64,000 nucleotides of DNA. Source: Mytilus edulis (lineage: Eukaryota). The notes beneath the pieces were generated by a model, which saw only the letters and a list, made by a program, of their open reading frames with translations, was not told where the DNA came from and did no database searches. The stretch lies in assembly GCF_963676685.1 (NCBI RefSeq), contig NC_092352.1, positions 59,210,001-59,274,000 on the forward strand. The letters are read 5' to 3'. Below are positions 9,740 through 64,000 of this stretch, piece by piece; the stretch's first letter is position 1, and every line of letters starts with the position of its first letter. The position numbers were made by a program, and so were the translations under genes.

Positions 9740-11738
9740 TCACAAGTTTTCATATGTATGATGTTCTATATAAGGAATTGTTTGATCATTTTCTATTTTA
9801 CCGAGGTGATCAGCTACGTCATACGTGTCATCAACTGAATGGTCGTACATATCGTCAGAGGTGGTACTCTTATGTCTGTTGAGATGCGCATGATCATAAA
9901 TGTCATCCACGGTTTCAATATACGGATCATCATCTTTGACTTCATCACATATTGGCGATGCTAGTTCATAATTATTTGCAGTAACTGTGGTTTGATTGCT
10001 TCTATCGTATCCAGTTTCTACCGGGTCAAGGGTAAAGTAAACAGCTGATGACACATGTGGTATATCGCTGTTGTTGATTTGTTCTTTGACTGTCCGGAAT
10101 GATCCGGTTTCAAGCTGATCTATCGTGAAATAACTAGACGATGGTACTTTATTTACTCCGCCATTTTTTATTTCTGAGAATGCAATATTTTGATGGCCAC
10201 AATATGTGTACGATTCAGATTTCACCATGCCATGTGTTGTATTATCTTTCTTTTGTTCAACTGTGGTGTGACAAGTAAAATATCTATAGAAAAATAAATG
10301 AAATAGCAGCTTTTACCATTCTTCAATATTCATCAATAAAATTAGCCTTATCCTTCCAACCTCAAACACACCAAAAGGGACGTTTTCGTTGATTTGACAA
10401 TGGTCAAGCCTCTGCCACACGATGGTACATAATAAACTTTGAATATAAAAAAGATGATGTGGTATGATTGTCAATTAGACCACTTTCCACAAGAGACCAA
10501 ATGAAATTAACAACTAGATGTCACCGTACGACCTTCAACAACGAGCAAAGTCAATACCGCATAGTCAGCTATGAAAGGCTTTAAAATGACAATGTAAAAA
10601 AAAAATCAAACGATAATACTAATGGCCTAATTTATATACAAACAATGAACGAAAAAAAAATATGTAACACAAGTTGGCGGGATCCAAACCCTCGTCCTAA
10701 TCTGTGACAGTGCTGTAACAGTACAACATAAGAACGAACTATAAAAAACAGTCGAAAAAGTCGAAAAAGTCATTCGATTGAAACAAATAAATAATACACA
10801 AAGTGGACGTAGCCGGGTAATTGTATATCCCAACAACAATAATACAATAAGTACAGATGTGAAAGTACTCGCAGTTACTGACAGCTAGTTCAAAGCCATT
10901 TTAAAACAACTAATAAAAAGTCATGCATCTAAGACTAGTAAGTTATCAATCAGAACCCATCCAACATCCAATGGAGTCTGCTTTCGCCTTCATGCATTAA
11001 ATGTTGACATACCAGGCCCTTTTATAGCTTAAGGGTAGTTGTATCACGGAAACATCTCTTCAGTGTTACAAATAGATAGACCAGGATAAAACTACATGTT
11101 GAGCATCTAAATCATGACGTCTGTTAACGCATTATTCAATAAATTGATAATGGAGGAGGAGGGAGCATACATTTGGAAATACGAGATGTATTTTGATTCA
11201 GTGCAACCACTTATCAAGATATGCTTACCCTTCCGAAGCATGTGAAAATTCCCTAAGTTTTCGGCTTGATTCGTGTTGCTCACTCTTTGGATTTCTATGT
11301 TGTGCTTTGTGTACTGTTGTTTATAGAAATTAGAATACGTGGCACGAGTGCAAATGAGACAAGTAAACTCTCCATCTAAGTCACAGTGTATAAAAAGTTA
11401 ACAATTATAGCCTTCAACACGGAGCCTTGGTTCTAACCGAACAACAAGCTATAAAGGACCCCAAAATTACTAGACTGAGTGTAAACAATTAAAACAAGTT
11501 TGTCTGATTGTCTGATTTATTTTTTAACTAGGTAATCATTTCATTTTTGATATACAAATGTATTGGTTTGAATGTAGCTTTGGTATTATTCACCTCTGTA
11601 TTATAACACACTTTCAAGCCTAAAAATTTACGTTGTGTTCAAAAAAATTATATCATAATTACCTTTTTGCTAAGAAAACAAACAGTGTAAAAGAAACTAT
11701 CCCTACTGCTCCACCAATTACACAGATTAGTAATATAA
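9740..11738 (-). CDS. Gene B: multi-tyrosine-tail receptor, TM exon and cytoplasmic exon (ectodomain unresolved)
   Basis: 76-nt TM exon 11738-11663 (ILLICVIGGAVGIVSFTLFVFLAKR) splices in phase 2 to terminal exon 10283-9740, which carries SSYFTIDQLETG, VYFTLDPVETGYDR, NYELASP, IYDHA, MYDHSVDDTYD and C-terminal TYENL. Confidence 0.75.
10446..10975 (+). repeat. Abundant interspersed repeat (AAGATGTGGTATGATTGCCAATGAGACAAC family)
   Basis: Homologous to 17620-18050 and to minus-strand copies at about 29430-29905 and 26680-26790. Confidence 0.7.
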
Positions 11739-12559
11739 CTGTTAAATATAAATGGTTTCATTCTATTATTGACAATTGCAAATCGGCATTTTATATTTTT
11801 ATCTAGATATATTTATAGTATTTGTTCAAGTGTCGACGTATTCTTATCCTTAGACAGAAAGTAAAACATATAAAAACAAGGGGAATACGTTATGTTGTGC
11901 ACGGGATGTAAACAAATGCAGACACGTCCAGCTGGTCTGCATCAAACGTCTTTTGAAGGAATATTACAACTGACTCTTCTCAGCTATAGGAACCATTGGG
12001 ATTTTTTAATTTCTGTACCTATGCAACATAACATAATTTTTTTCAAGTGATTGACGAAGTATCAGCCATTGTTTTCATTTTTTCATTTTATGTGTTGTTC
12101 TGATCAAAGTTGAAATGTTTATCTAGGAATGGAAAGAAAAAGACATTCGATTTCTCTTAATATGTACACTTTTCTCGGATCATATGTAAAAGAATTGAGA
12201 CAGTTTATAGTTTAATATATTGTATATCTATTATCGGAGACACGGATGCAGTTGGGATAATTTTTAAATAGCACCAAATTGTTTGACAAGTTGATTGATA
12301 TAAATAATTGTTATGCATTCAATGATCAAAAGTTTCGGGTTAATCCATTTTGAAAAGTGTTTTTATTATTGAGATATATGGCAAAAGAGGAAGCATATAT
12401 TGATAGTAATGTTTTTTTTTCGATCCAAGTGCATGCTTTTAATGCCTAGTGTACTTTTTCAAAGAACCCAGCTATTTGTGGTTGGTCTTCATTTGTTTCA
12501 TGACTTCATGCATGACTGTTTGAATTTATGAAATTGATGGAAAACTAAATGTTTCAGAG

Positions 12560-15106: not shown

Positions 15107-15712
15107 TCAATGGGATCTTAATCAAAATACACTAAAAACCAATGAGACACCAAAAGGCGATGAGATCTAACCTAAAGACACTAAAAACAATGAGATTCCA
15201 TCAAAAGACACTACAAACCAATGAGATCCCACCAAAAGACACTAAAAAACAATGAGATTTGACTAAAAGACACAATAAACCAATGAGATCCAACCTAAAG
15301 ACGCTACAAACCAATGAGATACAACCAAAAGACACTCAAATCAATGAGATTTCACCAAAAGACACTAAAAACTAAAGATATCCCACCAAAAGACACTAAA
15401 AACTAAAGATATCCCACCAAAAGACACTCAAACCAATGAGATTCAACCTAGAAACCAAAAAAAGCAATGAGATCTAACCTAAAGACACCAAAACCAATTA
15501 GATCCCACCAAAAGAAACTTAAAACCCATGAGATCCCACCAAAAGACACCACAGACCAATGAGATCCCATCTAAAGACACTACAAACCAATGAGATCCTG
15601 CCTTAAACACCAAAAACCAATAAGATCCCACCAAAAGACACCAATAACCATAGAGATCAAATCTAATTTATAAAAGACACTATAAAGTGAGGGATTCCAT
15701 CAAAAACACACT
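15107..15712 (+). repeat. Degenerate ~30-31 bp minisatellite (CCAATGAGATCCCACCAAAAGACACTAAAAA), roughly 19 units
   Basis: Periodic CAATGAGAT...AAAGACAC visible throughout. Confidence 0.85.
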
Positions 15713-19093: not shown

Positions 19094-22000
19094 CTATACA
19101 TTTATTTTCTTTTGAAATAAGTCATAATCATCTGATGTCCGTTTTTCTCTACATAATTCATAATTAGCGTGATCTGCTTTTCTTGGTCCGCCATATTGCT
19201 GAGGTGTTACATAGTACACATCTTCAGAATGGCTATACAGATTGTTTTCACTTTTTGCACATTTGTTATAACTTTCACCAGCAATATTGTAGGTGTCTGC
19301 ATTACACGCACTATCACTGTTCGATACACAATTAGGGGCCTCTTTTTCACTGTCGGCTGGTTTTGCAAGTTCATACTGTTGTGGTTCATATGACGTAGTG
19401 TTTGAAATCGGTTTTGCAAGTTCGTAATTTGTCGCGTTTAAATCTTTGGTTTCACAAAAATCGTCACTTTTATATTTATTTTTAGTTGACACTTTTAAAA
19501 TTTTTGACCGATCGGACCCATCATCGGTTGAAGACAAATCGATATAATCTCCGATTTTCATTTCTTTCTTACTAATCGGAGTTTGTTTTACATGAACACG
19601 TGCATTATTCCCAAGGTCAGTAGGACGGTTATTATAGGGAGGTAACTTCGGAGGTTCCAACGAATCGTACACCGTCATATAACTATGTGGTTGATCAAAA
19701 CGAACTTGTGAGAATTCATCATACTGATGATTTCTCCCTTCGCTATAAATTCCTAGAGTGTCGTATTCTTCATTTTCGCCATTGGTTACGGTTGTCAATT
19801 GAGAATCAGTTGAGGTTACATTCCTATGTCCATTATTATTATAATGTTGATCGTATTTTCGTTTATTAAAACATGAAAATCTGTAAAAAAAATATGTAAG
19901 AAATAAAACATGGATTTTCGAAACGAGTTATGAAGTCTCGTATCAAAATCGTAGACTTAAAATGTATCAGCAGATGTTTTACATTGTCAACTACGGCTAC
20001 GGTGCTATCTACAGTACATCAAGAAAACAAACCACTTCCCCATTGCAACGATTGTAAGCTTGAGTTTACTTGTTTTACGTTGTTCTTACTTGTCAGAGTA
20101 CCAAAGTTCTTACACAGAGTACATAACCTGTTGAAAATTATATATTCCGGAATCTAAAATCGGTATCATAAAAAAGCATACATAGTCAGTACTCAGCTAT
20201 TTTTTTTTTTTTTTGGTTATTAGTCAGAGTAAAGGGTACTGATTTCAATTAAGTTTTTGATTTTTTTTTAGTACTCAGCTATTCGCAAGAAGTTACAAAA
20301 TTTCCCTCAGATTTTGTTTTTTTAACTACAGTAGTTCAAAACTAAGGTCAGGGTAAGAATTTTCGATTAGTGTAATATTCGCATGCTTACCTTCTCAGGA
20401 TGACAACACATAATATCAATACCAATAACAGAAATATCAGCCCTCCAACCACGCCTCCAAGAATACCTATAACATGATAACAAAGTTTAATTTAGAACTT
20501 GAACTAATGAATTCCACTTTAGTGTACATTTTTAGATATTGATACATTTACATGTTTTGGGAGATTTTTTATCAGCACTGATGCATGCGCAGTGACACAT
20601 ATTACACTGCATATCTGGATTCTTGACCCGTAAACCACGGCGACATCATGACTAAAGCCATCCCCTCCCACCATCCATTTGTGTTTGTAGAACTTAAACA
20701 TGTCTCCTTATTTTTCAGTGGTAAATTGAAACGTTGCTAAATTCTACATCACTCTGGTGACAATAGTTGTCTCATTGGCAATCATACATGTACCATACTT
20801 TCCATTAAAACACACTCTGTCTACCATTATGTCCATTTCTTTGTTGATTGCTTTTCATTGAAACTGGTTTTTTTTTAATAAACTTCCTAATAATTGTATG
20901 GTTATATCTAGATCATTATATAAAACTTACTAGTGACGATTGGTTGATTTGCAGTACAATCTTACTAGGTCAACAACGTTTCACCTTATATATATATATA
21001 AGCTATCGAGAATTCCCCTATTATTCTATATCAAACCGATGTCAAAAACTAACTTAGTTGAGGTCTGATTTTGATGATATTTTTAATGTTAAACTAATGT
21101 AGAATTATTTTTTTTTTAAAAGTGTTTTTTATGAAATAATAGGAGAATTTTTCAAAAGTGAAACACTGTGACTGTTGACTCAAGACTGTTCATGTACTGT
21201 AACATAAAGACTGTACATGTACTGTAACATAAAGACTGTACATGTACTGTAACATAAAGACTGTACATGTTCTGTAACATAAAGACTGTACATGTAATGT
21301 AACATAAAGACTGTACATGTACTGTAACATAACATAATAAATTAATCATTACATACCAGCTGTTAGAATTTTATCCACTTGAGAAGTTCTGTTTCCATTT
21401 GTACTATTGGTTGGGTATGTAGGTGTTGCTGGAAATGAACATTTATTTTTATTTATTTCAGTTTCAACATTTTGAGTGTACAATTTGCATAATTATATGA
21501 GATTCTGAAATTGGATCCTTCATTTCCTTACTCTTGAACTTGTTAGACCATTTTTGGCTGTTCTTAACTTATTGTTACGAAAAGCACTGTTCTCTATTCT
21601 TTATGTTTTGATGTTATTATTCTTCAGTCTTCAATTTTTATCCTTTATTTCCACACTTTTCACCCCAAGTCTCTTTTCTGTAAACCCTATTCAGATACTT
21701 GGGTATGGAAAATACAAAGGGTACATGTAGCTTTGGTACCAAAAAAATCATGAATAATTCTGGTAACGTTACTCTTTTTTTTTTTCAGAAACGAGTAATA
21801 TTCTGTATCACCTTGTTATATGGCAATTTTCAACCATTGTTTTGAAAGTTTAAAGTCTTACAATGAAATCCTCAATTTGTAATGCGAAACCAGAGACAAG
21901 TAAATTTTGCCATAAATGACCTACATGTATATTATATATATCGTCGAAAGTTTTATCTTTGTTAAAAAAACAAATGACACTACAATAACTATTTTTTGCT

Positions 22001-25000
22001 AGGAAAGGGCTGCTTTTACATCTTTTCTAAATTCAAGTGGGTGAATTGCTGGTCTGACACCATTGTCCTATATTTAGCCCCGTGATGTAATTACCAAAAA
22101 AATAAAACAAACAATGCACTTATTCCGATAAACAAGGATTTTTTAAAAGGTTATCTTTACTGATAACTTTTTAAAACAATCATGTTGAAATGAATTTATG
22201 CGTGTTGTATAACAGAATGCACTTGGCGTTATAGATCTTTAAAGATTTGTAAGTGCATACCGACTACACAAGAGGGTCTGGAAAAGGGGGGGGGTGTCCT
22301 TCAGTTCCGTATTCTGTATTTTTGTTTTTGCCATTTTCTCTACATGTTTTAGACCCTCTGTCATTAGTCTCTATTCTTTTGTTATTTCCCCCCCCCCCCC
22401 CCCTTTCTGTAGTTTTTGAACCTAGTATGTATTTTACTTGTAGATTCGTCTATTATTCGGAGCACCCTTCGAGAGCTGGGAGGGTACAGTGGAATCCATG
22501 TACATTTCCTTTTGGGATTAATGAAGACGTGTCACTAAGTTTAGGTATTTACAACAATATGTAAAAGGCCAATCCCCACCCCCGAGTGCTAGGACATCGA
22601 TAAGTATGTTATATGGGGGAGGAAGTCTATTTATTTTACGAAAGCCACATCCAGACCCTCATATATACATGTATTAACAATAAATAGTGACCACTTGACA
22701 CAAGTACACGCAATAAGGTTGTAAATAAAACAAAAGGAAATAGACACGGGTCATAAATATGTCAAGTATGATATCGCCCTCATACATGTAATCGACCGTT
22801 CTGAATATTTCTTAAGTTTATAGGATATATAAAAAAATAATTGTTGACATGCTTACTTATAAAGTTCATATGGACGTTCATATCATTCAACTTTTTGTTT
22901 ATTATAATTTCTTTTTATTTAGAATGCGCCACACAACACTTGTTACACAGTAATATAAATAATCTTTTAGAAAACAAAATAACCAATATACTAATTTCGC
23001 ATTGTTTTTAAGCATATCTGAATGTCACAGTTCTGAATCTATTTTTCACTGTTTCGGTACAGGTACTCTGAGGGAACCATTACAAAGCAAGGCAAAATGT
23101 TTACCTCCTTAAAAAAAAAAAATTACAAAAAAGAAAAATACCACATTCTGTGTTATTTTCAATTCAAATTGAATTCGTCATCATGGTCATGACTAACAGC
23201 AATATTTGCCACCTTAAGTTCAAACAACAAGGAATAAATTAAGCAATTAAACAAAGCATTATACTTTAGAAAATATAAATTGGTGAGGTATAACGTCATC
23301 GACTCTAACAGTTGTGGTCGCAATAATTATGTTCTTGACTAATAAAAAAATCGACATACCATATTTGTCTTTATCTGTAGTCTCTCTGGTTGCTCTGGTA
23401 CTCGTTTGTATCCTACCTAAGTGATAAATCAAAAATACATAAAAAAAAAATGTTTAGCATTATACCTCAATTTCATATCGACTATAAACTGACACTGAGA
23501 AAAAAATGAATCTTATTGAAAAAAAACCAACCACCATGATGATTATAGTAAATGAAAAAGTATCTTCAAATTCGTTTTTCTATCACCAATTGATATCTAA
23601 AGCAAACACACTTCTGTATGGTGTTGTTTGATGTTCTTAAACATAAAGTAAGTACTATTACTAAATCTCTTTTATTTTGCCGGTACATTTTAATTGCTAC
23701 GTCTTTAATACAACCATAATGTCAGTACAAACTATTGACCAGTCTTAAATCACAAAACCGAAGATGGAATGTCAAATGATTTTTTCTCCTTTTTCTCCAC
23801 TTTGGTTTATAGCTCTTCGTCCTTTTTATAAGCTATGGTTTTCAAGAATTTTGGCATCGAGCATCACTGACGAGAAATTGATTATCGAAATTTGCATCTA
23901 GTGCTGAAAAATTGGTATAGTTTGTTATTATTATGAAGGTGACATATTTACCTTGTGTGGTTTTTGAAAAATATCCTGGAAACCGTGTAGATCTTTTATT
24001 TGCATTGCTTGTGCTAGTTATCTTGACAGTTGTAGTAGAGAAGTCGTCATCTATGTCTAAAGATAATAAAAATATTACTGGGGGATCAAACAAATGTCAA
24101 GGTTAGCAAACATCAAAGATTTCTACATTTCTTTTTATTCAAAGCAACCAAGTCTCAGTAATCGACAAATGGCTAACAGGCAATATTTAGTCCAGAGAAA
24201 CTACATATAGGTATAAATAAAGGCAATATTAGTATTCAGTCATAAATCTATTTAACTTAAACAAATCCGGGTCACAACCAAAACTGAGAGAAACCCTTCA
24301 ACTCTAAGGGAGAAAAACCAGAACAACAGAAACACTGAACTGCTACAAAACAAACGCCAACATATACAAAGAAACGGACTATGTGATAACAACTGCCATA
24401 TTCATGACTTGGTCAATGAATAAAATGTGGGTTGAACCTGGTTTTATGGCTAGCCAAAACTCCCACTTATAATGCAATGTTAAAAATACCGCTAAATTAA
24501 AGTAATAACATTACGCAACAGGAATATACATGTTACAGTAGTACAAATCAATGCAAGAACACTCAGGACAGATAAAAGCATATATAAATGATAAAGTTCA
24601 TTTCAAAATGTAAACCACAGAATAAAGCGAACTCGATGTTCAGAAAGCTTAAATAGTTTTTACTTCGCTTGAACTCATTCTGTAAATATGTTGTGAACGT
24701 AAAGACAAGATAGTATACGGATAATTTTGTAACAACAACTTGGGAGACATTAAAAGGACATGTACTGCCACGGTCTTATCATGAATATACCATCAACCAA
24801 CAATACAAGTACAATGTTGGCTTCTAAAAAATATTTCAAATGAAATGTAAGTGGATTGAATTTCAATAGACTCTGAATATGATTTGTTAGAGTTTGCATG
24901 GACGGAATATCAACACGACTAAAAAAAAAAACAACATAAAAGACACAAAAGGACAAACAACAGTTCACAAAACAAAGCAAAGAAAAGTGATGTGCAAGGT

Positions 25001-27183
25001 ACATGTATTTCCAAAAGAAATTCGTGTACGGGGAAAATGTGACACGATAGAAAAGATTTTGAACAATTGGAAGGGGGCACAATTATCGTCCTTTTGTTTT
25101 AGAGGACCTAGTAGGTTAAGGTTTAGATTAAGGGAGAAATTTGTTTGCGCCAAAATTGCGTCCTTTTGCGCCCAAATTTGTTTCTCCAATGCTAGTAAGT
25201 TTGCGCCACCTGTTTTAAAATTACACTGTATCATTTGCGCCAAAATTAAAACATACAATTGCGCCATTTTAACGTAAAAATACTTCTCTCCTACTTTATC
25301 CGGGCAGTTTACACGGAAAATGTTTCATCTACTGAAACATGTCAACTTCTTACTGCTGATACACAATTTAATGTACAATGTACAATGTATGTAGTAGCTT
25401 GTACAATGTAGCTTCACTATATTGTCCAACAATACAAACATTGAAGGATAGGATGCATAACAGTTTATTGAAATTCTTGTAGAACGCCTCTGCCCCACAT
25501 ATGTACGTCTTGTGGTAGATGGGGTTTCAGCTCATACGGATGGTGGGAACAAAACACTGTCATCAACATATATATGGCTTAAAAATAATCAGTAAAATCG
25601 TTATTTGTTTTCTCTTTTGGGCTTTCTTGTGCATTTTAAGAAATTCTCCTTTTGAAATATCCCCGCACGTGTGATACTTTATAAGCCAAAAACAAGAAAA
25701 ATACATAATAATCCATAATATGAATGATAAATATGTGTAAATTGGCGCAAATGAGTTCTGAATATTGGTGCAATTGATACATTTGCAAAAACAAAAATGG
25801 CGCCAATGATACTCCTGAAAAAAGTAATTGGCGCAAAAGGACTCCTACCTAGATTAAGCAATTATCGCCTGTTATGTGATATTTTACTCGAGGACATTAA
25901 TCGGATTTAACAATGTAAGAATGGACAAGAACAATAATACTTCTCATTTGTTTAATAGGATCCTAGACATAATTAAGTGATTATAGCTTTAAAAGAGACA
26001 TATAAATTAACACTTATATTGTTTGTCTGGTTAATCCTTTAATGTAAAATATCGCCGTGATGATTGCCCCTAAAATTAGAAATTCAAATTTAAACGCAAT
26101 CAATTTGGCATATTCAAAACAAAATCAAGGGTCTTGTGTTTACAGTAGTGGTAATAACGTTCGCTATAAACAACATGTACATTAAAATGTACAAGTCACA
26201 TACGACGAACTTTTTAAAAGGGGTTATCATATACATCTGGTGAAATATTTAGAGAATAACCAAGAAAAATAAAAATGACAGTCACTCTTAAAGTAACTCT
26301 TGAATACTAGTCGTCTATGAACCTGATTTGATTTACTACATGTAGTACCTTTGATAAAGCAGACTTTAAACTCTGCACTGCATTTGTCAGACACCCATAT
26401 TGATCTCGTATTAAATCCATAATTTTCATTTTCTGTACACTTATTTTTCTTTTTCTCTTCTACTATTTCAATGGAGACAATCTTCCCATCTTCTGGTATA
26501 TCTTCAACCACACACGTGACAGGACGTTTATCTCTCTTCGGGTTGCATTCTTCATATTTACATTGTTGTGCTAAAGGGTTTAAAAGCAATACAGTACATA
26601 AGTGCATTGTGTACTGATACACATTATACAAAATAAAAAGTCATGCTTTGATGTCTCTGGTAAACAGTCTTTGCATAACTGACTATGCGGTATTGGCTTT
26701 GCTCATTGTTTAAGGCCGCCTGGTGACCTACAGTTTTAAATTTCTGTGTCATTTTAGTATCTTGTGGAGAGTTGTCTCATTGGAAATTATACCGCATCTT
26801 CTTTTTCTTGTTCTTTGTGTATATTTCAATTTTTATAGTATAGTGTATGCATCAATTTCTATAATTAAAATTTTCAAGATATAATTTGGTTGAAAAATAT
26901 ATTATCATAAAGATAAGAAAATGTGGTACAAATGTATGATTGCCAGTGAGACAACTATCTACCAGGGACCCGCATATATATTTTTAAAAGTGCAATCATT
27001 CGGCATATTTTCATACTATTTATATATAATTACAAATATGTACTTTAATCTTGAAATGTATTACTACGTTGTAGCTATACCTAGTAGTAATTAATTTCCT
27101 TTCGAATATTTAAAACTGCAAGACTTACCGCCATCACAATAGATTAAAACACAAATGCCTACGAAAATCCGAAATATCTCCAT
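19094..27183 (-). CDS. Gene C: type I receptor with signal peptide, ADEL/DUF3011-like lectin domain, Ser/Thr stalk, TM and multi-tyrosine tail (457 aa as modelled)
   Basis: Seven in-frame GT-AG exons: 27183-27129 (MEIFRIFVGICVLIYCDG); 26570-26349 (QQCKYEECNP...KCTENENYGFNTRSIWVSDKCSAEFKVCFIK); stalk exons 24056-23952, 23416-23360, 21428-21357; TM 20466-20391 (ILGGVVGGLIFLLLVLILCVVILRR); tail 19880-19094. Total 1374 nt, no internal stop. Confidence 0.8.
21184..21331 (+). repeat. 25-bp tandem repeat (GACTGTACATGTACTGTAACATAAA), about 6 units, in a gene C intron
   Basis: 25-bp period seen directly. Confidence 0.9.
25135..25850. mobile_element. Probable non-autonomous transposon with oppositely oriented TTGCGCC/TGGCGC motifs, in a gene C intron
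   Basis: Five TTGCGCC motifs at 25144-25266 and TGGCGC motifs at 25743-25836. Confidence 0.5.
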
Positions 27184-36300: not shown

Positions 36301-36613
36301 TTATATTAGCCACTACATTATTATAAGATGTTCGATTTTTTTATAATACAACTGCACGTATAAAAATATCTACATACAAACCAAGCTTAATGTGTTTTTT
36401 TATTTAACATATCATTCAATACTCAAATTAATATTCAATACGTATGTATGCAAACCTGGTTTATACCTTTGTTGCGAAATATTCATAGTTTTTAGGATTG
36501 CAGTGGTTGAAGCATATATTGGTTGACATTTCATTATTTGCTGTTGTGAATGGTCCAACATGTAATAGTCTTCTACTGCCACGATCTTTAAAGCATCCAA
36601 TGTAGGTGAACAT
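30340..36613 (-). CDS. Gene D: WSC-domain single-pass receptor with multi-tyrosine tail (413 aa from the Met at the WSC start; N-terminus uncertain)
   Basis: In-frame segments 36613-36467 (MFTYIGCFKD...ICFNHC...YFATK), 35415-35259 (LKYHCFCGNG...DCYMKCRGHPSMNCGGIWAASVY), stalk 33224-33153 and 32552-32490, 76-nt TM 32135-32060 (IGIGLTIVVFLSIVAAVSFLFWRRR), tail 31066-30340. All 8 WSC cysteines present. Confidence 0.8.
35861..36303. mobile_element. Foldback MITE with ~200-bp inverted repeats, in the intron that splits the gene D WSC domain
   Basis: AATGAAATTCAAAACAGTGTGGCTGTGGCCATTGATTGACACATTAAA... is mirrored at the right end and the symmetry continues nearly to the centre; TA flanks. Confidence 0.85.
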
Positions 36614-40000: not shown

Positions 40001-40221
40001 CAACAAAATAACTATCCATGAAAAACAGGCCCCAGACTTGGGACAGGCAGATACGGAATATAAAAGGGTCAAAAATGTTTGAAAGTGCCAACCATCTAAT
40101 GACATGGGACAGAGGTATAACAGCACAACATAAGAACTTATTATTATATAAAAACCAGTTTAAAAGGGCTTAACTCATCAGATCGATACCAAACAAAAAA
40201 CACATCTAGCAAAAGTACAGA
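37062..40221. repeat. ~1.58-kb tandem duplication covering the upstream exon and promoter of gene D
   Basis: 37062-38644 aligns with 38652-40221, with scattered substitutions and small indels. Confidence 0.9.
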
Positions 40222-47700: not shown

Positions 47701-48156
47701 TATATTGCATGAGTGTGAAAAAACACGAAAGACAACCTAAACGCATTGATATGTTATCCTATTTTTTTCTGATAATTCTCACTCTTTCAATGAAGAATCA
47801 AATTTATGCACCAACCTTTTTTCAAAAGTCTTAGTTCTTTAATCCATTTCAGGCTATCATGATGCATATGGCTAACTATTTTAGATGTAGTTAAATAATC
47901 AACTGTACGTGTATAATTATACGGTATTGAACTCTAGGTATGCATTAAAGATTAATGAAAACTTATCATAATAAGGTAACATTATTATTTATAAACTGTA
48001 CCTCTGTTGCAAAATATTGATAGTTTTTGGAACTACAATAGTTAAAGCAGATGCTGGTCGACATTTCATTATTCCATTTGGTGTATGGTCCTACAGGAAA
48101 CAGTCTTTTTGTACTATCTTTGAAGCATCCAATGTACGTATACATTTTGTGAAATG
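41726..48156 (-). CDS. Gene E: WSC-domain single-pass receptor with multi-tyrosine tail, close paralog of D (378 aa from Met 48145; N-terminus uncertain)
   Basis: Exons 48156-48002 (MYTYIGCFKD...ICFNYC...YFATE), 47025-46869 (YSSQCFCGNG...DCNLPCIGHVKQMCGGSWRASVY), 45163-45131 (PKPSTSYSDI), 76-nt TM 43526-43451 (IGVGITIALLIIIVAVISCLFWKRR), tail 42452-41726 (727 nt, same length as D). All 8 WSC cysteines present. Confidence 0.8.
44347..45110. mobile_element. MITE with TA target duplication (Tc1/mariner-like), in a gene E intron
   Basis: TIRs CTGTGAAAGTACTTT..TTCGTGGG..CAATTTTCGTGG / CCACGAAAATTG..CCCACGAA..AAAGTACTTTCACAG; TA on both sides; shorter relatives at about 38168-38375 and 39746-39955. 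Confidence 0.8.
46375..46592 (+). repeat. Copy of the retroelement 3' tail seen at 4378-4600
   Basis: Closely similar TTTTAATTTTAGTTTCTTGTGTACAATTTGG...CCATTCTCAATTTTA. Confidence 0.8.
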
Positions 48157-48739
48157 CTAAAATAGTAATCAGTGAAATAAACATTTGTATTTTGTATTTT
48201 GTGTTTGTTTTTATATTGAACAACGAAAAACCTGTACATGCATTTTCGTTAAAATAAATATACCCAAGCCTGTGCTTAAATACTGTAGTTGTCTCTTATG
48301 GGTATCGACAATTGACATATAAATATAGTTTTGTTAACGTATCAATTACTTTAAGGTTTACTGAATTAAATGTAAATAAAAAATAAGCGGCATTAATTTA
48401 AATAGCAAAACAATGACAAAAGATGAATAAGTAGAATTACTTTAACTCACTTTAATTGTGGTATGTCTTTGCTGCGTTATTTGCACTAAATTTGTAATAT
48501 GATTAGGCAAACAGACTAGTTATATGGTACATGTATTACGAACTTTATTTTGAAAAATATCCGTTGCAGTTTCCTTATAAACATGTAAACATCAATCTTA
48601 TTATCATCTTAGATTTAAACTAAGGTCACTTCCGATACGTAAAATAACAAACAAAAATATTATTATTTTTAAATGTACTCGTTTTTGATTTTTTTTCAAA
48701 CTATATATTAAGAAAATACACAAAATATTGGCAACATTT

Positions 48740-49307: not shown

Positions 49308-50202
49308 TTGTTTTAGTTATAAAATAAAAATATTTTATATTCAGTTTAACATAGCATATTTCAAATATGTAAGTACTATTTAAATCCCAAAGTATATTAT
49401 TTTCCTTTGATATCCCTTATATCAGCGACGGCATAGTGACACACAGGAGAAAAGCTAAAATACATTTTTTAAATGTAAAATATGTGTATTTATCGCACCA
49501 CTGGTAAAATATCACGTTGTGATTGGTTTAGCGCCGTCACGTGGTGATCCCCTATGGATCCGCAGGGGGTTTGTAAAATTCATTGCTTATATTTCTTCCA
49601 ACCGCAGCAGGAAAAGTTCTGCATGTTGTAAATTCGTTATACGGTTCACTACTGACCCCCTACGAATCCATAGAGGGTGAGTAAAATTCATAGGGACCTT
49701 GGCCTACAGCCTCACTCTATTGATTTTACTAAACCTCTATGGATCCGTAGTAGGGGGTCAGTAGGAACCATATAACTTATAGTATGTTCCCAAAAGTGTC
49801 TACTTAATATGCTATGATATGATTAATAAGAAAGCTCTTTAACTTTGTACATGATTTGGCTTTTTAACGTTTTACTCGAGCGTCACTAGTGAGTCTTTTG
49901 TAGACGACACGCCTCTGACATACAACAGTATCAGCCTGGTATCTTTGATATGTCTCTGCCACATGTACGAAATATAAAACATGTTAACAGAGTCAAAGGC
50001 TCCCACTGATCATAATATGTGTTCGACTATGTGTCAGCTTCCTTTATGAAACAGTCAAATAACATAATGCAACACAATTTTTTTTTATGCTAAATGATAA
50101 TTCAACCAATGAAGACGTTGTTATCAAAATTCATAAGGTATGGAAACGTTGATATTAATACATGTTATAGTGATATTAAAATCTTGTAGTGTGAGTTTTT
50201 TG

Positions 50203-50368
50203 GAATTCTTTTATAAGGGAGATTCCATGAATGAGGAATTCGTTTATAAGGGATATTCAATGAATGAGGAATTCTTTTATAAGGGAAATTCAATGAATGA
50301 GGAATTCTTTTATAAGAGATATTCAATGAATGAGGAATTCTTTTATAAGGTATATTCAATGAATGAGG
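50203..50368 (+). repeat. 33-bp tandem repeat (GAATTCTTTTATAAGGGATATTCAATGAATGAG) x5
   Basis: Seen directly; explains the repetitive ORFs 50140-50430 and 50165-50458. Confidence 0.9.
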
Positions 50369-51612: not shown

Positions 51613-52088
51613 TTAATAGTGCACTAAATTCGGATCCATCGATGGTGGCATTGCCTCTTCTGTTGATTTGTTTGTATTTTCACTCCATGACAAATGATTG
51701 GTAGGAATATCTCTCGATTGATGGATATATTCAACTGAATTTCGATTGTTCGATAACGAATTATAAGTGTTGCAATTGCAGTTGCTTTCTTCCTGTTGAA
51801 TAGAAGAGGACATGTTTGGTAGTTGACATTGAGTTGTGTTACATGTACTTGTGGGTCTGCTTTTATTTATCCCAGGGATAAAAATATCCGTCATTTCATT
51901 GTAAATTATATCAGTATAACTAGGTAAATCATTCCTATCTGTTATATTTTGATATTGTAGAATCTCACAAGGAGGCAAATCTTTGCCTCGCTTTCGTTTG
52001 AGGCAAACAACTAGGATGACAACAAAAGCAACAAACAATAATAGGACCAACACAGGCAAGAAAATTATTGTATATACTGAGGAATCAG
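51613..52088 (-). CDS. Intact TM-plus-cytoplasmic exon with an ITAM-like motif
   Basis: Acceptor TTTTTTTTGTAG; reads DSSVYTIIFLPVLVLLLFVAFVVILVVCLKRKRG... then YQNI-x8-YTDI, YNEM, YNSL; open to TAA at 51613. Confidence 0.65.
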
Positions 52089-55000
52089 CTACAAAAAAAA
52101 TATATTTACATAAAACAGAAACAAAAACTGCATGCCATAAATATTCATATATATGGCTAAATACAATTCATAATTATATGTTTTTGTATTCTAAAGCTGA
52201 ATAACCGAAAACAAAATGTCGTGTGTTTCAAATCAAAGACATTCATATTAGTATTTCCTGCTAAGTTCGTGTCATGAAGGAGAATAAAAGGAGAATGTCT
52301 TCTAGGTCTGTGTTGACATGAATTATCATTGTTATTGTCATAATTATAAATAAGCTATATACAACACGTTGCATTGTTTAATTACTAAGGCGTTTCTACC
52401 TCCGAAATAGATTCCCTTTGCAGTATTTGGCGAAACTGTTGGAAATGTTTGGTCCACTATGCTCGTTAACTTCCTACTTCATTTGTCCTTTTTAAAACTT
52501 TTTTGATTTTAGTGTTACTAATGAGTCTTTTGTAAAGGAAAAATGCGTCTTGCAAATGTAAAACTTCAGTCCTGATATCCATGATGAGTTTATTTACTGC
52601 GTTAAAAATTCTTGCATTGGACAAAGAAACCGTTACATTTGAGTTTTTAAGTATAAAACGTTTGTTTTTGATTACGTCATTTTTGTTGGTTCATTAAATT
52701 TAGTAAGAAAAAGTCTGAAAATTACGTTATTGGAGACAATTAAAACATATTAATACATATATATATGTTGATCTGGTAATAAATCGAAAGTAAACAAAAT
52801 CAATTACAATCGTGACCGGTGATATACATGTTACATTACTTCTCGCATTACGTTAATATGTTTATAGGTTATACGTTTATAACGCTTATTTGTAACTAAT
52901 AAGGGCAACAGTAGTATACCGCTGTTCGAAAGTCAGCAATTGATTGAAAGAAAAAAAAAACGGGTTACAAACTTAAACCAAGGAAAACCTATAAGAGGTA
53001 AACAACGAAAAAAGTGCAATAAAAAAACCGACAATGTAACACATCCAGAAACGTACTATAACAACTGCATATTCCTGACCTGGTACAAATACACGGTTTA
53101 CCTTTAACAGATTATCTTGTTTCGGAGTTGTTAGGGTATGGTTTGACGTCGATGACTGATGAGCTTGAAGTAAAAAGTATATTATGGTGAGTAAATAAAT
53201 GAAAATATAATGCAGTATTTACTTTCCTTAAATATATTAACGTAATGATTTAAGAGTCAAAATGAGAACCATTTAACGGCACAAGAAACAAACAATACAA
53301 AGCAATAAATTAAAATAACGTATGTGATATGAATTATTGGGATATGTATTGTATTCACAATCAGCCTTTCATTTTTCTTAAATATTTGTAACATATTTTT
53401 AAGAACCCAAACTGATTGTTGTGGTTTCCCTTCGATTGATAAAATATTTGCAACGCGGGGGATATTGTAACATGTTTATTGTTTTTGTGTCTGTCTGTTT
53501 ACGGCATTGGTTGTTTTAAGGAACCAAAAGGACGCAAACAGTACCACACATACACAAATGACGATGGACAAGACGTGGTGTTATCACAATTTTGCATTAT
53601 TTGAACAATACAGACTTTGACGTGTTAAACAAGCTCTAATATCTTTAAATGGACATTTTGTGAAGCAACACATGTACTCAACATATCTGTATATTTTATA
53701 AAGAGAGGCTCTCCATGTTTTACCGCATTTCATTGTAACATGACCTTTGAATAATATGTTGCAATCTTTTTCTCTTTTTCTTTTATACTGTTTGGAACCT
53801 AGTTGTCTCCAATGACCATAAAAAACATTCGTTTCCGTACTTTAATTAAACGTAAATAAAACAAAATGAACTGACTTACAATAAATGAAGATTAAGGTAA
53901 AGTAACAGTAAATGAACGCCGTCTAGCGGATTCCGCGAAATATTGCGACGTTTTGTACGAATTACGTCCCTTTGACCAGATTTTGCAAAGTAAAAATTGC
54001 ACCCGGCGACTTTTCGATGTGACAATGTCAACGGTTTTGACGGAAAGTATGTAACTTCTATGAGAATGAACTTGTTTTTCTAAAATTAAAAATTGAAAAT
54101 GATATGAAAACAGTCCTGAAGAGGATCTTCAAAATGAAAATCAGGACGTAGGGTGGTAGAGTTTGTATATCTGCCGACCAGTTAAACATGTTAAAACAAG
54201 TGTGAAAACTGTTGCTCACTACTATTTCTACATAATTGTGATGAGAAAAAACAGTGTGGTCTCGGAAGTATTCTATATGTTGTATGTCAAAACTGTCCTT
54301 TCAAAAACCCTATATTCACTGGGAAAAGACATCGTCTAGCAGCAAATAAGCAGAAGGGGTGCAAGTTTGGGACATTAATACAAAAGATTCAAAAACTTAG
54401 TATTGTACGGTAAGACTATTTCTCCCATATTTTGAAAATTATCACACCAGTCGGAACAAGGAAAAATATTTTCAAATTAGAGAAAAGGAAATGAACCACA
54501 TAAACTAATACTGGTCATAAATTCGCCGCTGCTGCCAGTCAGTCATAGATGGCACTAAACTATAATACACTTAAATTAATTAACCTTGTTCACGGCTGGA
54601 ACAATAGTTTAATATTCATACACAGTTTTTAGACTATAACAAATTAAAAATAAACAAAAATGATCTTTCACGATCATTAATCCATCGCTACATTTTGTAT
54701 TCTAACGTTGCTGTTTTTTTTTTTGTAATGGTGTTTTCTTTCACGTCCGCAATTTCGATGTTAAAAGTAGAACACAAATCTTTAAATAGATACATGTATA
54801 AATAGTATATGGTTTGAAGATTTATACATGGCTTAGTTTCCTAATAGTATTGATTCGTATGGTTGTCTTCTCAAAGGAATTGTTATATATATATATGGGT
54901 AAAAAATCTACCGAATCAAAAAAAATGTACCCTAGCTGAAAGTAGCATCTCAAATATAAGATAGAACTGTTGTCAATTCTATTTCACTCATAAAACTTGA

Positions 55001-59150: not shown

Positions 59151-59832
59151 ATGACAAACCACAATCTACCATGTTGTAAAAATGTCCTTAGCTAGTTTGG
59201 TCAAAGACACATCGTATGGGTCAACTAATTCGTGATGGTGTCAATTTTAATCTGTCCTCCTCATAACTTTGTTGAAGCAGTTTCTGTGTAAGGAGCACAC
59301 TTCTGTATATGAAGTCCGTATAGTGTGAAGATATGGTATGAATGTTAATGAGACAACTCACCGTCCAAGTGACGATTAGTAAAATTCAACCACTATAGGT
59401 CTTTAACGCGGAGCATTGGCTCACACTGAATAACACGCTATAAAGGACCCCAAAAAATGACTAGTGTAAAACCATTCAAACGGGAAATCCAACTGTCTAA
59501 TCTATATTTATAAAGCATGTTTATGAAAAATATCTCCTACAACCTCTGTTGCAAAATATTCCAAGTTTGTAGATTTGCAGTGGTGAGAGCAGATTTTGGT
59601 GGACATTTCATAATTTCTTGTTATAAAAGATCCGACAGGCACTAACCTTTTAGAGTTATCTTCAACGTAACCAATGTATATATAATCTGAAATTTTATTT
59701 AGCAGAAGTATATTATTCAATGAAATATATGATTTGATATTGATTATATGGAAATCACACATTGTCAAGTGGTATCTAAAATACACTAAGTAATATTCAA
59801 ATTAAAATTTAAATGTTAAACATTTCAAAGTC

Positions 59833-61136
59833 AAATTAAAATGTCAATTGTTCTTGAACAATTGAGAGGTCTTTCCTTTTTGAAATGTAAAGTACATGTT
59901 CGTATAGGCGTAGAATGCATTGAAAAGCTCTCAAACACACACAAAACCGTTAAAAATGACAAAAACAACAAATTCGATAATTTGGACATGACCTTGACTT
60001 TTGACCTTGTAACCTTTGTGAAGGTCATTGGTCCACAATGTCATTGTAAAAGACCCCATGGGTCTAGGACTTTTCGTTCAAGAGTTAAAGCTAATTTTAC
60101 CTTTTCAGAAACCGTTAACGGGGGTTATGCCCCTTAAGAATATGTCAAATCCTTTCGGTCAAAATGTAAAAAAAGTTGTGCCTCAGTCACCTAAACATTT
60201 TTCACTGTTTACTATTTCTGTAAGATCAACCATTTTGAGATATCGACTAAAAAGTTGAAAGGTCAAAGGTCAAGGTCAACCTTAAAAACATTTAAAACAC
60301 ACTAAAAATCCTTAAAATAAGGTCAAAAACACATAATTCGCTATCTGGGACATGACCTTGACCTTTGACCTTGTGACCTTTGTCAAAGTCATTAGACCCC
60401 AATGTCATTGCTGAAGACCCCATGGGACTAGGACCTTTGGTTATATAGTAAAAGCTTATTTTGTCTTTTCAGAAACCTAAATCAGGGTTTATACCCCTTA
60501 CAGAAAGGTCAAATCTCCGGTCAAAATGTAACAAAGTTGCGCATTAATGACCCAAACATTTTCCACTATTCAAAACTTAGTATAATAGTTTCTAAGATTA
60601 TCCGGTAACAAGGTGTTAGGTCAAAGGTCAAGGTCAACATACACATTTGACCTTGAGGTATTTTTCAAAGTCACATGAATTGTTGATTAATGGTGAAGAT
60701 CCTAGGTGTCTACGACTTACGGTTTCTGAGTTTTGGTGGCCAACCGACACCGGTTAATTTTAATAGGGGCATAACCCTAGCAATGAGTCGTTGAATCTTT
60801 TCGATCCAAATGTAACGAAGAACCGGGGTCTGGTCCTGAACAAATTTCACCCTACCTTTTTTTTCTACCTATTACGGTTACGGTGTTGGAACGGTAACAA
60901 GGTTTTGGGGTTTCGGAGGGATTACTTCGCACCGACAAAATTTTTCGACTCACAGGGTGAGTTCCGGATAGGTATTCATGACACCGATACAAAGTGTGAA
61001 CATGAAAGCGACACGTCTTACGGTTAAGGCTGCTAACTTCGTCAAAGTTTGGCGGAATAATAATAATAATAATAATAATAATAAACAGAAGAAATACAGT
61101 AAGGTCTTTCCCTTTTGTAAAAGGAAAGACCTTAAT
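59833..61136 (+). mobile_element. Helentron/DINE-1-like non-autonomous element in the first intron of gene F
   Basis: 5' palindrome CAATTGTTCTTGAACAATTG; two ~360-bp internal units rich in TGACCTTGACCTTTGACC; (AAT)n microsatellite; 3' hairpin AAGGTCTTTCC...GGAAAGACCTT. Confidence 0.65.
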
Positions 61137-63674
61137 TACTGTTCTGATTTCCATATTTGTTTTGTTATATGAATAGATAAAGCACTGACATATACAGTAA
61201 AATCAATTGAAAACACTTTTCTTACAAAATTGACAAGCAAATCATGCCTCCAAAAAAAATGGAATAGTTAAATACGTTTACTCATTTTGTGTGAAACATG
61301 TCAATGTTTTCATTTAAAGGATATATATATGCAGAGAGATGATACAGGGCTACCCACTTTATTTCGCCAATGTCCGTTCCATTTTCCTTCATAAACATGT
61401 ATACACATGTTAAAACTCTTTCTATTGACAATTGTGGTTTTTAAAAGGCGATTTTCCGATCAAACCACAAAACCACGTGATACTAAAGTATTTTTTAGCA
61501 GTTATTCTATCCTTCTTCAATATACTTATATGACTATTTGGTGGCTCATATATTTTATTTTACATTGTATTGGACAACGCATGACGGGGAATAAAGAAGA
61601 TGTCGAATTTCAAATCTAATATATTCAGTGTAAAAAAAAATCACATACAATAAAAAACAAAATTATAAAAAACATTAACGTGTGATACATTGTGTAAACA
61701 CTTGTCCATGATTATCCAACAAAAAATTGTTTATTTAAATTTAGAAATAAGACTATTGATTTCCGTCGTCTTAAAAAAAACCGAAGCTGTTGAAATAACC
61801 TGCCTATATGTAGTCTGATTGTACATTTCCTATTCTAATGCAGCTATTGTTTTTACAAAAAAAGAACTTTATATTTAGTAAAGCAATATCAAGTATCATG
61901 GGATGTATGAGATGCAAACACAATTCTAAAGTCAACACACACTACACAAAAATGCAGTGAAAATAAATCTTTCATAAAGCGAAATCCTCAAGATATGTCA
62001 TTTGATCTGCCTTTTACTGATACAAATCAAGTCGGGAAGGCACATAAACCACGTACACGTTGGCTTAAAAATGAGTTTTGACGGTTTTGTAAATGCAAAA
62101 TTATCCTGACAAATATAAATGGTCAATTAAACAATCAAGTATGCTGATGTCGTAGCAATAACTTTTAAAATTCAAGTGAATACAAATGAAAACTACAAAT
62201 GCATTACATTACTAAATAGTTTTTAGACAATTAAGTGGCAACTAAACGTGTGTTTGATAATAATAATGTAAAAATTATCACATAAATACAAATGTATGGT
62301 TTCCATTTAAAGCACTTGCAAGTTACTATTTGAATGTAGATCGGTAGTATGACGACGACAGACAAAGGTCGTTCTTGATTCCATGCGATACCCATTACTT
62401 CTGTATTTTTAGCTGTATTCGTCAATGCTGTTTCTATTAGCGAGACGTTAACCGAATTTTTCTTTTATACAGCTAACGATCTTAGGTTTTAAGATAAATT
62501 TAAATAAACAAAATGCAGACTAGGTTCATGTTTATTGGCATTGACACTTATACCACATTTTCTTATATTTGTATCTAATTTTCGGTGGTTCAAAACAGAG
62601 ATTTGCTTGCATGGTTAGATATTGACTTTTAATTGGCATTATAGATATCGTCCTCTATACTGTCATATATACATGCCTAGAATAAATATGGATAACAGGT
62701 TGAAAATTCAAATCATTAAAACACGTTGATTTTACCGTTGTTGTTGAAAAAGTATTTCTTTCATTACTAAAAACACGATAAAACATTTTGCTGTATAGAA
62801 ATTCCACAGAAAGCTAATTCGGGCATTGTGTACATGTATGAAATATAAAGTCTTCCCAAAGTACAGTGGCTATGATTGAGCACAGTGATGTATTTTAGTA
62901 GTCTTACTCAAATTAATATGTTCTGTTTCTAGTATGGACATTTAGTTATTTAAGTGATTGAATAACATACTCTGTGTGAACCTGCATAACAAATTTAAAA
63001 TAACGAAAAATGGATTAAACAACACACTGATTAAACATTATCAAGTATAAAACATGTGTCATTAGTTCATTTTTTTTAGAAACACAATAAAACCATGAGT
63101 ATGGGTTGCCGTACATTTTCAAAATGTCTAAATCTAAAACATTGTTTAATATAGTATTGAAGCTAAATATAAAAATGTTGTCTAACTTTTCACCATTTTA
63201 TATTTCCAAGAATTTGACAATGTATAATGACGTCACATAAAAAGTTCATAGCAAAGTCTCTTTCTATAGATCATTGAATATAACTCGAAAAATCGACTGC
63301 ATTCTTATAACCAATGATAAAAAGGTACCAACATTTTCTGCAACAGATAAGCATTTTGACAATGAAGAACTCTTCAGTGATCTCGAGGCCAAAATATTTG
63401 AAAATCCAAAATTTATAAAAAGTATTTAGAGCTATAAACCGAAAATTACAAATAAGTATAGCCAAATCCGAGCAAGGAATCAGAGCTATGCCCGAGGTAG
63501 ATACATTCCTTAATTTTAAAAAACTACAAATATTTTGTAACAGCTAATTTTAATAACACAAAATTTGTATTTTCGTTGACAGTTCAATTCAGGACGATAT
63601 GAACCAAAATGTGTAGAGACATACACACAATAAATACGCTAAAAAAATCCATGGCCATCATTGACACAATCTAG

Positions 63675-64000
63675 CTACAAGTGATCATAATCATGCGATG
63701 AATCTCCTGTCCTTGGTGATCGATTTTGATTTGTTGTGTCATACACAGCATCAACAGAATGACTGTATGTATGTTCGTTATCATCTTTTGGTCTGCATAC
63801 TTGATTCAAAATGTCATATTGACCATCCTTATTTAGGATATAATTCCCTTCTTCACTTGTTTCATGATTCTGAATAGCATGCTCTTGAATAGATTTACCA
63901 GAGTTCTCGATTTTTAATGATTGAAAATGCATGTCGTCTCTGTGTTTCGTCCGGTCAAATCCAGTCTCGGCTGGGTCAAGGACAGTATACGAATCATCAT
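63675..64000 (-). CDS. Gene G: 3' part of the tail exon of another multi-tyrosine receptor paralog (continues past the window)
   Basis: Open from the window edge: DDSYTVLDPAETGFDR...EGNYIL..DGQYDILN...TYSHSVDAVYD...DYDHL*, the same motif order as B, D and E. Confidence 0.75.
   Translation of the reverse strand, partial: DDSYTVLDPAETGFDRTKHRDDMHFQSLKIENSGKSIQEHAIQNHETSEEGNYILNKDGQYDILNQVCRPKDDNEHTYSHSVDAVYDTTNQNRSPRTGDSSHDYDHL

Follow-up and report, generated by a model that had tools for sequence, protein, structure and literature searches.

Among the systems described to date, the closest to the genes analyzed here each share only part of their architecture. The Aplysia egg lectins AKL/ADEL belong to the DUF3011 family, and in AKL, a secreted protein with three repeats, the DUF3011-like repeats are the presumed carbohydrate-recognition units and the protein binds galacturonic acid (PMC5484111). 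Kinase-less engulfment receptors of the Draper/CED-1/MEGF10 type appear to signal through cytoplasmic tyrosine motifs that are phosphorylated by Src-family kinases and recruit Syk-type kinases and adaptors, whereas the fungal Wsc1-3/Mid2 cell-wall integrity sensors probably place a WSC domain and a Ser/Thr-rich stalk outside the cell, followed by a single transmembrane (TM) helix and a cytoplasmic tail. Vertebrate clustered immune receptors (KIR/LILR, Siglec, CEACAM, fish NITR) seem to evolve as tandem birth-and-death clusters, pairing related heads with alternative tails. This study examined a window of 64,000 nucleotides from Mytilus edulis chromosome C9 (59.21-59.27 Mb; NC_092352.1, positions 59,210,001 to 59,274,000), in which six co-oriented minus-strand genes or fragments (designated B to G) lie in tandem. 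The genes are members of a large, unnamed family of membrane receptors that joins different outer binding domains to a shared membrane-and-tail cassette rich in conserved tyrosines, probably representing a sensing or immune receptor system.

A scan of both strands of the window for 76-nt AG..GT exons encoding a hydrophobic helix in phase 1 gave only six candidates, of which four (11663-11738, 20391-20466, 32060-32135 and 43451-43526, in genes B, C, D and E, respectively) each lie 0.5-1.4 kb upstream of a tail exon on the same strand. All four TM exons are phase 1 in and 2 out, end in ..AAG|gt and join to ag|A, which makes an Arg codon. The tail exons start 2 nt later than a plain reading of the open reading frames suggests, at 10283 (B), 19880 (C), 31066 (D) and 42452 (E). 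Homology of the tails was assessed with a profile built from 89 family tails that excluded the window's genes and their close orthologues; among all 836 stop-free segments of the window, this profile hit only the tails of D (E 1.7e-21), G (1e-20), B (2.4e-19) and E (9.5e-16). The tail of C was removed by the bias filter of HMMER in the default search, but with the filters off it scored 31.2 bits (E 1.1e-8), as compared to at most 2.9 bits for 1000 shuffles of the same tail. The tail of F does not match. The first-pass annotation, which had described a tandem array with different heads on a shared TM exon and tail, was confirmed, with several corrections.

Gene B consists of a tail exon (9740-10283, with its stop codon at 9740-9742) and the TM exon at 11663-11738. 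No head was detected between 11739 and 19093, either by tblastn with 140 family proteins or by a scan for stalk cassettes, and no database protein matched the tail at 50% identity or more, although a tail-only copy lies at C9:51.017 Mb. Gene C is intact and comprises an exon with the start codon and signal peptide (27129-27183), matching the N-terminus of the M. trossulus orthologue, a head exon (26349-26570), a Ser/Thr-rich stalk exon of 105 nt (23952-24056), two stalk cassettes in phase 1-1 of 57 nt (23360-23416) and 72 nt (21357-21428), the TM exon (20391-20466) and a divergent tail exon with stop codon (19094-19880) that is 87% identical to the tail of M. trossulus LOC134725215. The 57-nt and 72-nt cassettes are skipped in the M. 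trossulus isoforms X2 and X3, respectively. The head exon encodes one DUF3011-like six-Cys repeat (Pfam PF11218, E 5.7e-6, 26.8 bits against a cutoff of 25), but the match covers only positions 148-197 of the 197-position profile, the orthologue P0069 scores 24.1 bits, and the head has no sequence match in the PDB. Transcript contigs from three studies join the head exon, the three stalk exons and the TM exon at GT-AG sites, including the joints 26349>24056 and 23952>23416 and the link from the cassette at 21357 to the TM exon; one 1598-nt contig continues about 1 kb past the TM exon, although one raw-read RNA run showed no exon coverage of C.

Gene D, also intact, is identical in exon content to a RefSeq M. 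edulis protein (P0007), which itself carries a precomputed PF01822 (WSC) assignment. Its first WSC half-domain exon begins at the start codon (36467-36613; Pfam WSC E 1.2e-6) and is followed by a second half-domain exon of 157 nt (35259-35415; E 1.4e-5), both 98% identical to P0007, then by a 63-nt stalk cassette used in P0007 (32490-32552), the TM exon (32060-32135) and the tail exon with stop codon (30340-31066). An alternative Ser/Thr-rich stalk cassette of 72 nt in phase 1-1 (33153-33224) is similar to the doubled stalk of a M. californianus protein (P0004). Gene E has the same layout, with WSC half-domain exons at 48002-48145 (from the start codon; E 4.2e-8) and 46869-47025 (157 nt; E 1.4e-6), the TM exon at 43451-43526 and a tail exon with stop codon at 41726-42452 that is 69% identical to that of D. 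However, E is impaired, as its stalk cassette (45723-45785) is a relic with an open frame and intact donor that has lost the ancestral AG acceptor. The half-domain exons of D and E scored 25.7-33.7 bits each against the WSC profile. Only the last 107 codons of the 362-codon tail exon of gene G fall within the window (63678-64000), and the remainder of the tail, a TM exon of 67 nt (rather than 76 nt) with the same phases and two WSC exons lie 0.9-6.3 kb beyond it.

Gene F does not use the shared cassette. Its single exon at 51613-52077 encodes a TM helix plus an unrelated (type-2) tail with stop codon, for which at least 13 paralogous exons were found, all on C9, and annotated Mytilus proteins with this tail carry WSC, SRCR, MAM or SUEL heads. 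The first-pass annotation had noted this different tail exon separately but did not recognize it as a second tail family. The WSC head of F is degenerate, having lost 4 of 8 cysteines: the first half-domain relic (approximately 59541-59687) gave only a weak Pfam match (E 0.024), has its first Cys replaced and is 60% identical to a paralogue (P0150), while the second (approximately 53644-53823) gave no Pfam hit and has lost cysteines relative to P0150. A probable 5' exon of F lies at 61290-61408, where 61322-61408 is 90% identical to residues 1-29 of P0150 and 61290-61334 matches residues 27-41 at 60%.

Beyond the window, the type-1 tail profile found 130 representatives among 1.84 billion proteins, with the match always at the C-terminus. 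All 30 named representatives sampled are Mytilus proteins labelled uncharacterised or named only by their head domain, and literature searches found no description of the family. In the M. edulis genome at least 55 tail exons are present, with 64 genomic matches that were all on C9 or small scaffolds except for one weak hit; these include matches at 67.24-67.29 Mb, about 8 Mb from the window, where the 76-nt TM exon is also found. The same TM exon lies within 1.5 kb upstream of 19 of 30 tail loci genome-wide, including an SRCR gene (24/24 residues matching P0024) and a locus whose TM (20/24) and tail (88%) best match a MAM-headed protein (P0025). In a tally of 55 proteins, the heads comprised 13 MAM, 6 WSC, 6 SRCR, 2 SUEL-lectin, 1 Kringle and 1 DUF3011, while some members have only a mucin-like ectodomain, and many full-length members have clear signal peptides.

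Exchange between heads and tails was evident in the phylogenies. In the tail tree, each major head type needs at least 3 changes on well-supported branches. In the WSC-head tree, which requires at least two head-tail exchanges, the two type-2 proteins fall in different WSC subgroups, one of them pairing with a type-1 protein at 96/98 support, and none of 200 bootstrap trees unites them. Additionally, type-1 and type-2 genes alternate within one minus-strand array.

The tail is predicted to be disordered, with no secondary structure predicted (pLDDT 55.7) and no Pfam domain, including no kinase domain, found in any tail. Across 97 tails the best-kept columns are Tyr at 99, 97, 96 and 96%, and the near-invariant tyrosines are set in short motifs: a repeated YxxLDP..TGF unit, a YE.AKP unit, G.YD, IY.H.VD.VYD, TYDHF and a C-terminal DDYDI. 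In D-type orthologues the folded head is less conserved than the disordered tail (72% against 88%). The family consensus does not contain a conserved ITAM, as the conserved Tyr following the YxxL unit lies about 20 residues on and has Ala rather than Leu or Ile at +3, and the conserved close pair, 8 residues apart, lacks Leu/Ile at +3. As for the ITIM pattern, the YxxL unit itself is conserved at 71-78%, but the residue at -2 varies and fits in E but not in B, D or G.

Combined, these results suggest that the window holds six tandem members of a family of single-pass membrane proteins, found only in Mytilus among the named relatives sampled and lying essentially on one chromosome, that are assembled from exchangeable exon modules: a variable head, Ser/Thr-rich stalk cassettes in phase 1-1 that can be included or skipped, a TM exon and one long exon for an acidic cytoplasmic tail. 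Copies range from intact to decayed, in agreement with the birth-and-death cluster of modular receptors proposed by the first-pass annotation, and new head-tail combinations probably arise by unequal recombination within the tandem arrays. The most likely mechanism is that of kinase-less surface receptors in which the head binds a carbohydrate or other pattern ligand, clustering exposes the tail tyrosines to cytosolic Src/Syk-type kinases, and the phosphorylated motifs recruit SH2/PTB adaptors, with the YxxL units possibly also driving uptake. The ligands, tyrosine phosphorylation and any immune role are inferred. The outward topology of D, E and G is likewise inferred from the positive-inside rule (Arg/Lys directly follow the TM on the tail side) and from relatives, since gene models of these types in four species start at a Met directly before the WSC domain with no signal peptide, and the 11 nt (E) against 12 nt (D) between the likely acceptor and the ATG argue against an upstream coding exon in both genes. 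Overall, a probability of roughly 0.68 is assigned to this reading as a whole; its structural and evolutionary part is held with high confidence, whereas the phosphotyrosine-signaling mechanism is about as likely as not.

Alternatively, the proteins could be endocytic or scavenger cargo receptors in which the YxxL units and acidic clusters act as sorting signals for clathrin adaptors. This reading is consistent with the most often repeated tail unit beginning with YxxL, a match to the Yxx-hydrophobic sorting signal occurring in 1 to 5 copies, with the acidic tail (12% Asp and 7% Glu) and with the SRCR and lectin-type heads typical of scavenger receptors. However, it is considered unlikely because the four best-conserved tyrosines sit in YD-type motifs rather than in Yxx-hydrophobic context, and ten or so ordered motifs across 150-250 residues are far more than sorting requires, although the two functions are not mutually exclusive. 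A role as surface stress, adhesion or matrix sensors, with a WSC head on a glycosylated Ser/Thr stalk probing mucus, byssus or shell matrix and the tail anchoring cytoskeletal or GTPase regulators, would fit the layout of D, E and G and the members with only a mucin-like ectodomain, but appears improbable given that WSC is not the defining part of a family whose tail also follows MAM, SRCR, SUEL, Kringle and DUF3011 heads, and that the strong copy-number expansion and decay fit recognition receptors better than a housekeeping sensor. Finally, the tails are compositionally biased (Asp/Asn/Ser/Thr/Tyr-rich), and plain pairwise BLAST of C against D, E and G is weak (1e-3 to 4e-4), raising the possibility that the shared tail reflects similar composition in decaying or non-coding DNA and that the 76-nt exons are coincidence. 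This possibility is refuted by the spliced transcripts, the independent profile and the shuffled controls, and is further opposed by the collinear motifs, the identical exon length, phases and junction codon, the RefSeq models and a dN/dS of 0.44 for the D/E tail.

Comparing the locus with the described systems highlights both shared and distinct features. With the Draper/CED-1/MEGF10-type receptors, the family shares the absence of a kinase domain, but those receptors probably have EMI/EGF heads with NPxY and ITAM-like motifs and are conserved across animals as one or a few genes, whereas here the heads vary, the motifs differ and the family was found only in one genus, with 55 or more copies. 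The vertebrate clustered immune receptors, and transmembrane adaptors such as LAT/PAG, likewise appear to use disordered tails with several tyrosine docking sites; however, those receptor families seem to keep one head fold (Ig or C-type lectin) and vary the tail, whereas at least six unrelated head folds share a tail here. The fungal Wsc1-3/Mid2 sensors probably have the layout of D, E and G, and the animal proteins Kremen and polycystin-1 probably share the WSC domain, but in the mussel family WSC is only one of several interchangeable heads, and no tail similarity was seen insofar as no Pfam family matches the tail, without a direct comparison with the fungal sensor tails. Finally, the head of C matches the DUF3011 family of the Aplysia lectins but carries a single repeat on a stalk, TM helix and signaling-type tail, in contrast to the three repeats of the secreted AKL.

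The window is AT-rich (about 32% GC) and has one 100-nt N run at 5478-5577. To test whether the genes share a transmembrane (TM) exon, both strands were scanned for AG..GT exons of exactly 76 nt that encode a hydrophobic helix when read in phase 1, which gave six candidates in 64 kb. Four of these lie on the minus strand, each 0.5-1.4 kb upstream of a long Tyr-rich open frame: 11663-11738 (gene B), 20391-20466 (gene C), 32060-32135 (gene D) and 43451-43526 (gene E). All four end in ..AAG|gt and each tail exon starts ag|A, so that the junction always makes an Arg codon; the length of 76 nt with phase 1 in and phase 2 out, as read in the first-pass annotation, is therefore exact for B, C, D and E. 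The tails align collinearly through a series of short motifs. Because the tails are compositionally biased, a profile was built from 89 family tails after removing the window's genes and their close orthologues. Among all 836 stop-free segments of the window, this profile hit only D (1.7e-21), G (1e-20), B (2.4e-19) and E (9.5e-16). The tail of C was dropped by the HMMER bias filter, but with filters off it scores 31.2 bits (E 1.1e-8), while 1000 shuffles of C's own tail reach at most 2.9 bits. The tails are therefore homologous, with that of C being a divergent member. A search of the ESM Atlas with a tail returned only an unnamed mollusc cluster at 0.89, which gave no lead.

Exons were searched individually, and full-length comparisons used database proteins only. 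In the head exon of C, Pfam finds DUF3011 (26.8 bits against a cutoff of 25, one repeat unit only), whereas a PDB sequence search with this exon found nothing. Gene C was modelled from its M. trossulus orthologue (LOC134725215, three isoforms) and from direct reading of the sequence, giving a signal-peptide exon (27183-27129), a head exon (26570-26349), three stalk exons (24056-23952, 23416-23360 and 21428-21357), the TM exon (20466-20391) and a tail exon (19880-19097). Transcript support for this model was sought by aligning public runs to 20427-26426. Assembled contigs from three different studies show four joints with GT..AG ends on the minus strand (26349>24056, 23952>23416, 23360>21428 and 21357>20466), and one 1598-nt contig carries the end of the head exon, all stalk exons and the TM exon and runs on for about 1 kb more. 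One raw-read RNA run (X21) showed no exon coverage of C, its 34 aligned reads being repeat-like, partial matches; the splicing evidence therefore rests on the assembled contigs of the three other studies, whose RNA label is a guess but whose GT-AG joints show that they are spliced. Head, stalk and TM of C are therefore joined in RNA, and the TM-to-tail join is supported by the length of the contig, by the models of the orthologue and by the RefSeq model of D.

In both half-domain exons of D and of E, Pfam finds WSC. Gene D corresponds exon for exon to a RefSeq M. edulis protein of 389 aa (P0007). Gene E has every coding exon open; however, the homologue of D's stalk cassette has lost its AG acceptor, and no database protein corresponds to E. 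Gene E is either a stalk-less variant or an early casualty. A tandem duplication of about 1.6 kb (37098-38600 and 38686-40170), with the two copies 90-100% identical at the translated level, lies in the D-E intergenic region and is seen on both strands. Synonymous divergence between D (30343-36613) and E (41729-48145) is about 0.9-1.3 in the two WSC exons but 0.31-0.44 in the TM and tail exons (0.37 in the tail). Recent gene conversion was considered as an explanation for the low tail value, but the introns do not align at all, and large-tract conversion is therefore rejected. The contrast, which rests on small exon samples and stays unexplained, may reflect exon-limited conversion, synonymous constraint or sampling noise.

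Gene B has only the TM and tail exons. No head was found in the 7.3 kb up to the 3' end of C, whether by searching with all 140 family proteins, by a stalk-cassette scan or by comparison with its paralogue. This paralogue is a tail-only copy at 51.017 Mb (C9:51015525-51019067), 87% identical to B starting exactly at the exon boundary. No TM exon was found in the 1.5 kb scanned upstream of it and, apart from short repeat-like stretches, nothing else matched the region of B in the 10 kb aligned upstream. Gene G continues beyond the window with a 67-nt TM exon of the same phases and two WSC exons. Tandem repeat arrays lie in the introns or spacers of B, C and F at 15145-15658, 21182-21332, 50202-50368 and 59960-60637 (a 31-nt unit x16.7, a 25-nt unit x6, a 33-nt unit x5 and a 364-nt unit x1.9, respectively). 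On the opposite strand, a 138-codon ORF (7577-7993, plus strand) contains a strong TM helix followed by a Cys/Arg-rich stretch.

A 22-sequence profile of the C-terminal tail module found 130 representative proteins among 1.84 billion, and the match was always at the C-terminus. Thirty representatives from the top, middle and bottom of the list carried names; all were Mytilus (edulis, galloprovincialis, trossulus, californianus, coruscus), and all were labelled uncharacterised or named only after a head domain. In the M. edulis genome, the profile gives 64 matches, or about 55 distinct tail exons, all on C9 between 36.7 and 85.8 Mb or on small unplaced scaffolds, except for one weak hit with a stop codon on C11. 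In the other Mytilus species, the chromosome-scale hits that were sampled all lie on a single sequence per species. Pfam scans of the longer proteins show MAM (1-3 copies), WSC, SRCR (some with a SUEL-lectin domain), Kringle and DUF3011 heads, although many have no Pfam domain or only a mucin-like stretch, and many full-length members have clear signal peptides. The 76-nt TM exon lies within 1.5 kb upstream of 19 of 30 tail loci. One of these is the gene for an SRCR-headed protein (P0024; 24 of 24 residues identical), and another is a locus whose TM (20 of 24) and tail (88%) best match a MAM-headed protein (P0025). The cassette of TM exon plus tail exon is therefore a real shared module, as the first-pass annotation proposed.

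Gene F does not use this cassette. Its last exon (51616-52077, in the interval 51613-52077 on the minus strand) encodes its own TM helix and a different tail built of YES-type repeats. The first-pass annotation had, in a separate note, called the motif of F a canonically spaced ITAM; the spacing fits, but the second half lacks Leu/Ile at +3. This exon has at least 13 paralogues, all on C9 (50.29-50.82, 58.65-58.87, 59.05, 59.31, 59.54, 59.80-59.86 and 85.84 Mb) and interleaved with the first (type-1) family. Annotated Mytilus proteins with this second (type-2) tail carry WSC, SRCR, MAM or SUEL heads. The closest intact relative of F, a protein with WSC plus a type-2 tail (P0150), is encoded 36-46 kb beyond the window in the same minus-strand array, between two G-type type-1 genes. 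Compared with P0150, F has lost 4 of the 8 WSC cysteines, while its TM-plus-tail frame is still open.

In a tree of WSC heads, one type-2 protein pairs with a G-type type-1 protein (96/98 support), the other sits among D/E-type type-1 heads, and none of 200 bootstrap trees unites the two type-2 proteins. In the tail tree, each main head type needs at least three changes on well-supported branches, although head types are clustered more than chance would give. Heads and tails have thus been exchanged repeatedly; most copies, however, arise by plain duplication within a subfamily. In the window, D, E and G form one WSC clade of tails, C belongs to another clade, and B is unplaced.

The tail module is predicted to have no secondary structure (pLDDT 55.7, pTM 0.12). 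Across 97 representative tails, the best-conserved columns are four tyrosines (99, 97, 96 and 96%), followed by three more at 71-81%, mostly with an Asp next to them; Tyr makes up 6.9% of residues and Asp 11.9%. Arg/Lys follow the TM helix on the tail side. In D-type orthologue pairs, the folded head is less conserved than the disordered tail (72% against 88%), and dN/dS for the D/E tail is 0.44. This is the signature of a cytoplasmic scaffold of short linear motifs whose working residues are tyrosines. By analogy with kinase-less receptors such as Draper/MEGF10, ITAM and ITIM receptors, and LAT-type adaptors, the most likely mechanism is phosphorylation by cytosolic Src/Syk-type kinases after ligand-driven clustering, followed by SH2/PTB recruitment, although none of this is shown, no canonical ITAM is conserved, and for an ITIM the YxxL unit is conserved but the residue at -2 varies. 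The YxxL units could also serve endocytosis. The outward orientation of the WSC heads of D, E and G is likewise inferred, because D-, E- and G-type models in four species start at a Met directly before the WSC domain, with no signal peptide. About 90 nt upstream of the ATG (36614-36704 in D and 48146-48234 in E, minus strand) is conserved between D and E (75%), but with a frame-breaking length difference; the spacing between the likely acceptor and the ATG differs by one base between the two genes, so an upstream coding exon is unlikely. Insertion with the N-terminus outside and no cleaved signal is possible but unproven.

Bivalves lack adaptive immunity yet resist dense microbial exposure, and they are known for lineage-specific expansions of recognition genes, whereas how recognition is wired to the cell interior is mostly unknown. 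This family offers a concrete and testable case, combining a conserved disordered tail, with four near-invariant tyrosines, with at least six kinds of outer domain and a second alternative tail, all produced by local exon exchange on one chromosome. It provides defined peptides for finding the mussel SH2/PTB partners, a defined set of heads for glycan or microbe binding screens, and a natural system for studying how new receptor architectures arise by exon shuffling; it is probably relevant as well to presence/absence variation and disease resistance in farmed mussels. A more speculative and rather unlikely possibility is that mussels of the genus Mytilus have evolved their own combinatorial surface-receptor system on one chromosome, in which a pool of pattern-binding heads (WSC, MAM, SRCR, SUEL, DUF3011, Kringle) is repeatedly recombined with two alternative disordered tyrosine-motif tails. 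In this reading, the two tails would act as opposing or distinct signalling outputs, analogous to vertebrate paired activating and inhibitory receptors, but built from unrelated parts and using docking motifs not described elsewhere.

The tail has no Pfam family, and literature searches found no description of this receptor family. The kind of system is nevertheless familiar, as its probable mode of action is that of known clustered, kinase-less tyrosine-motif receptors evolving by birth and death, and no new principle is implied. It differs from these in sharing one tail among at least six unrelated head folds, in its motif set, in having a second interchangeable tail, and in being found only in one genus (among the named representatives sampled) and, apart from small scaffolds and the one weak hit on C11, on one chromosome.
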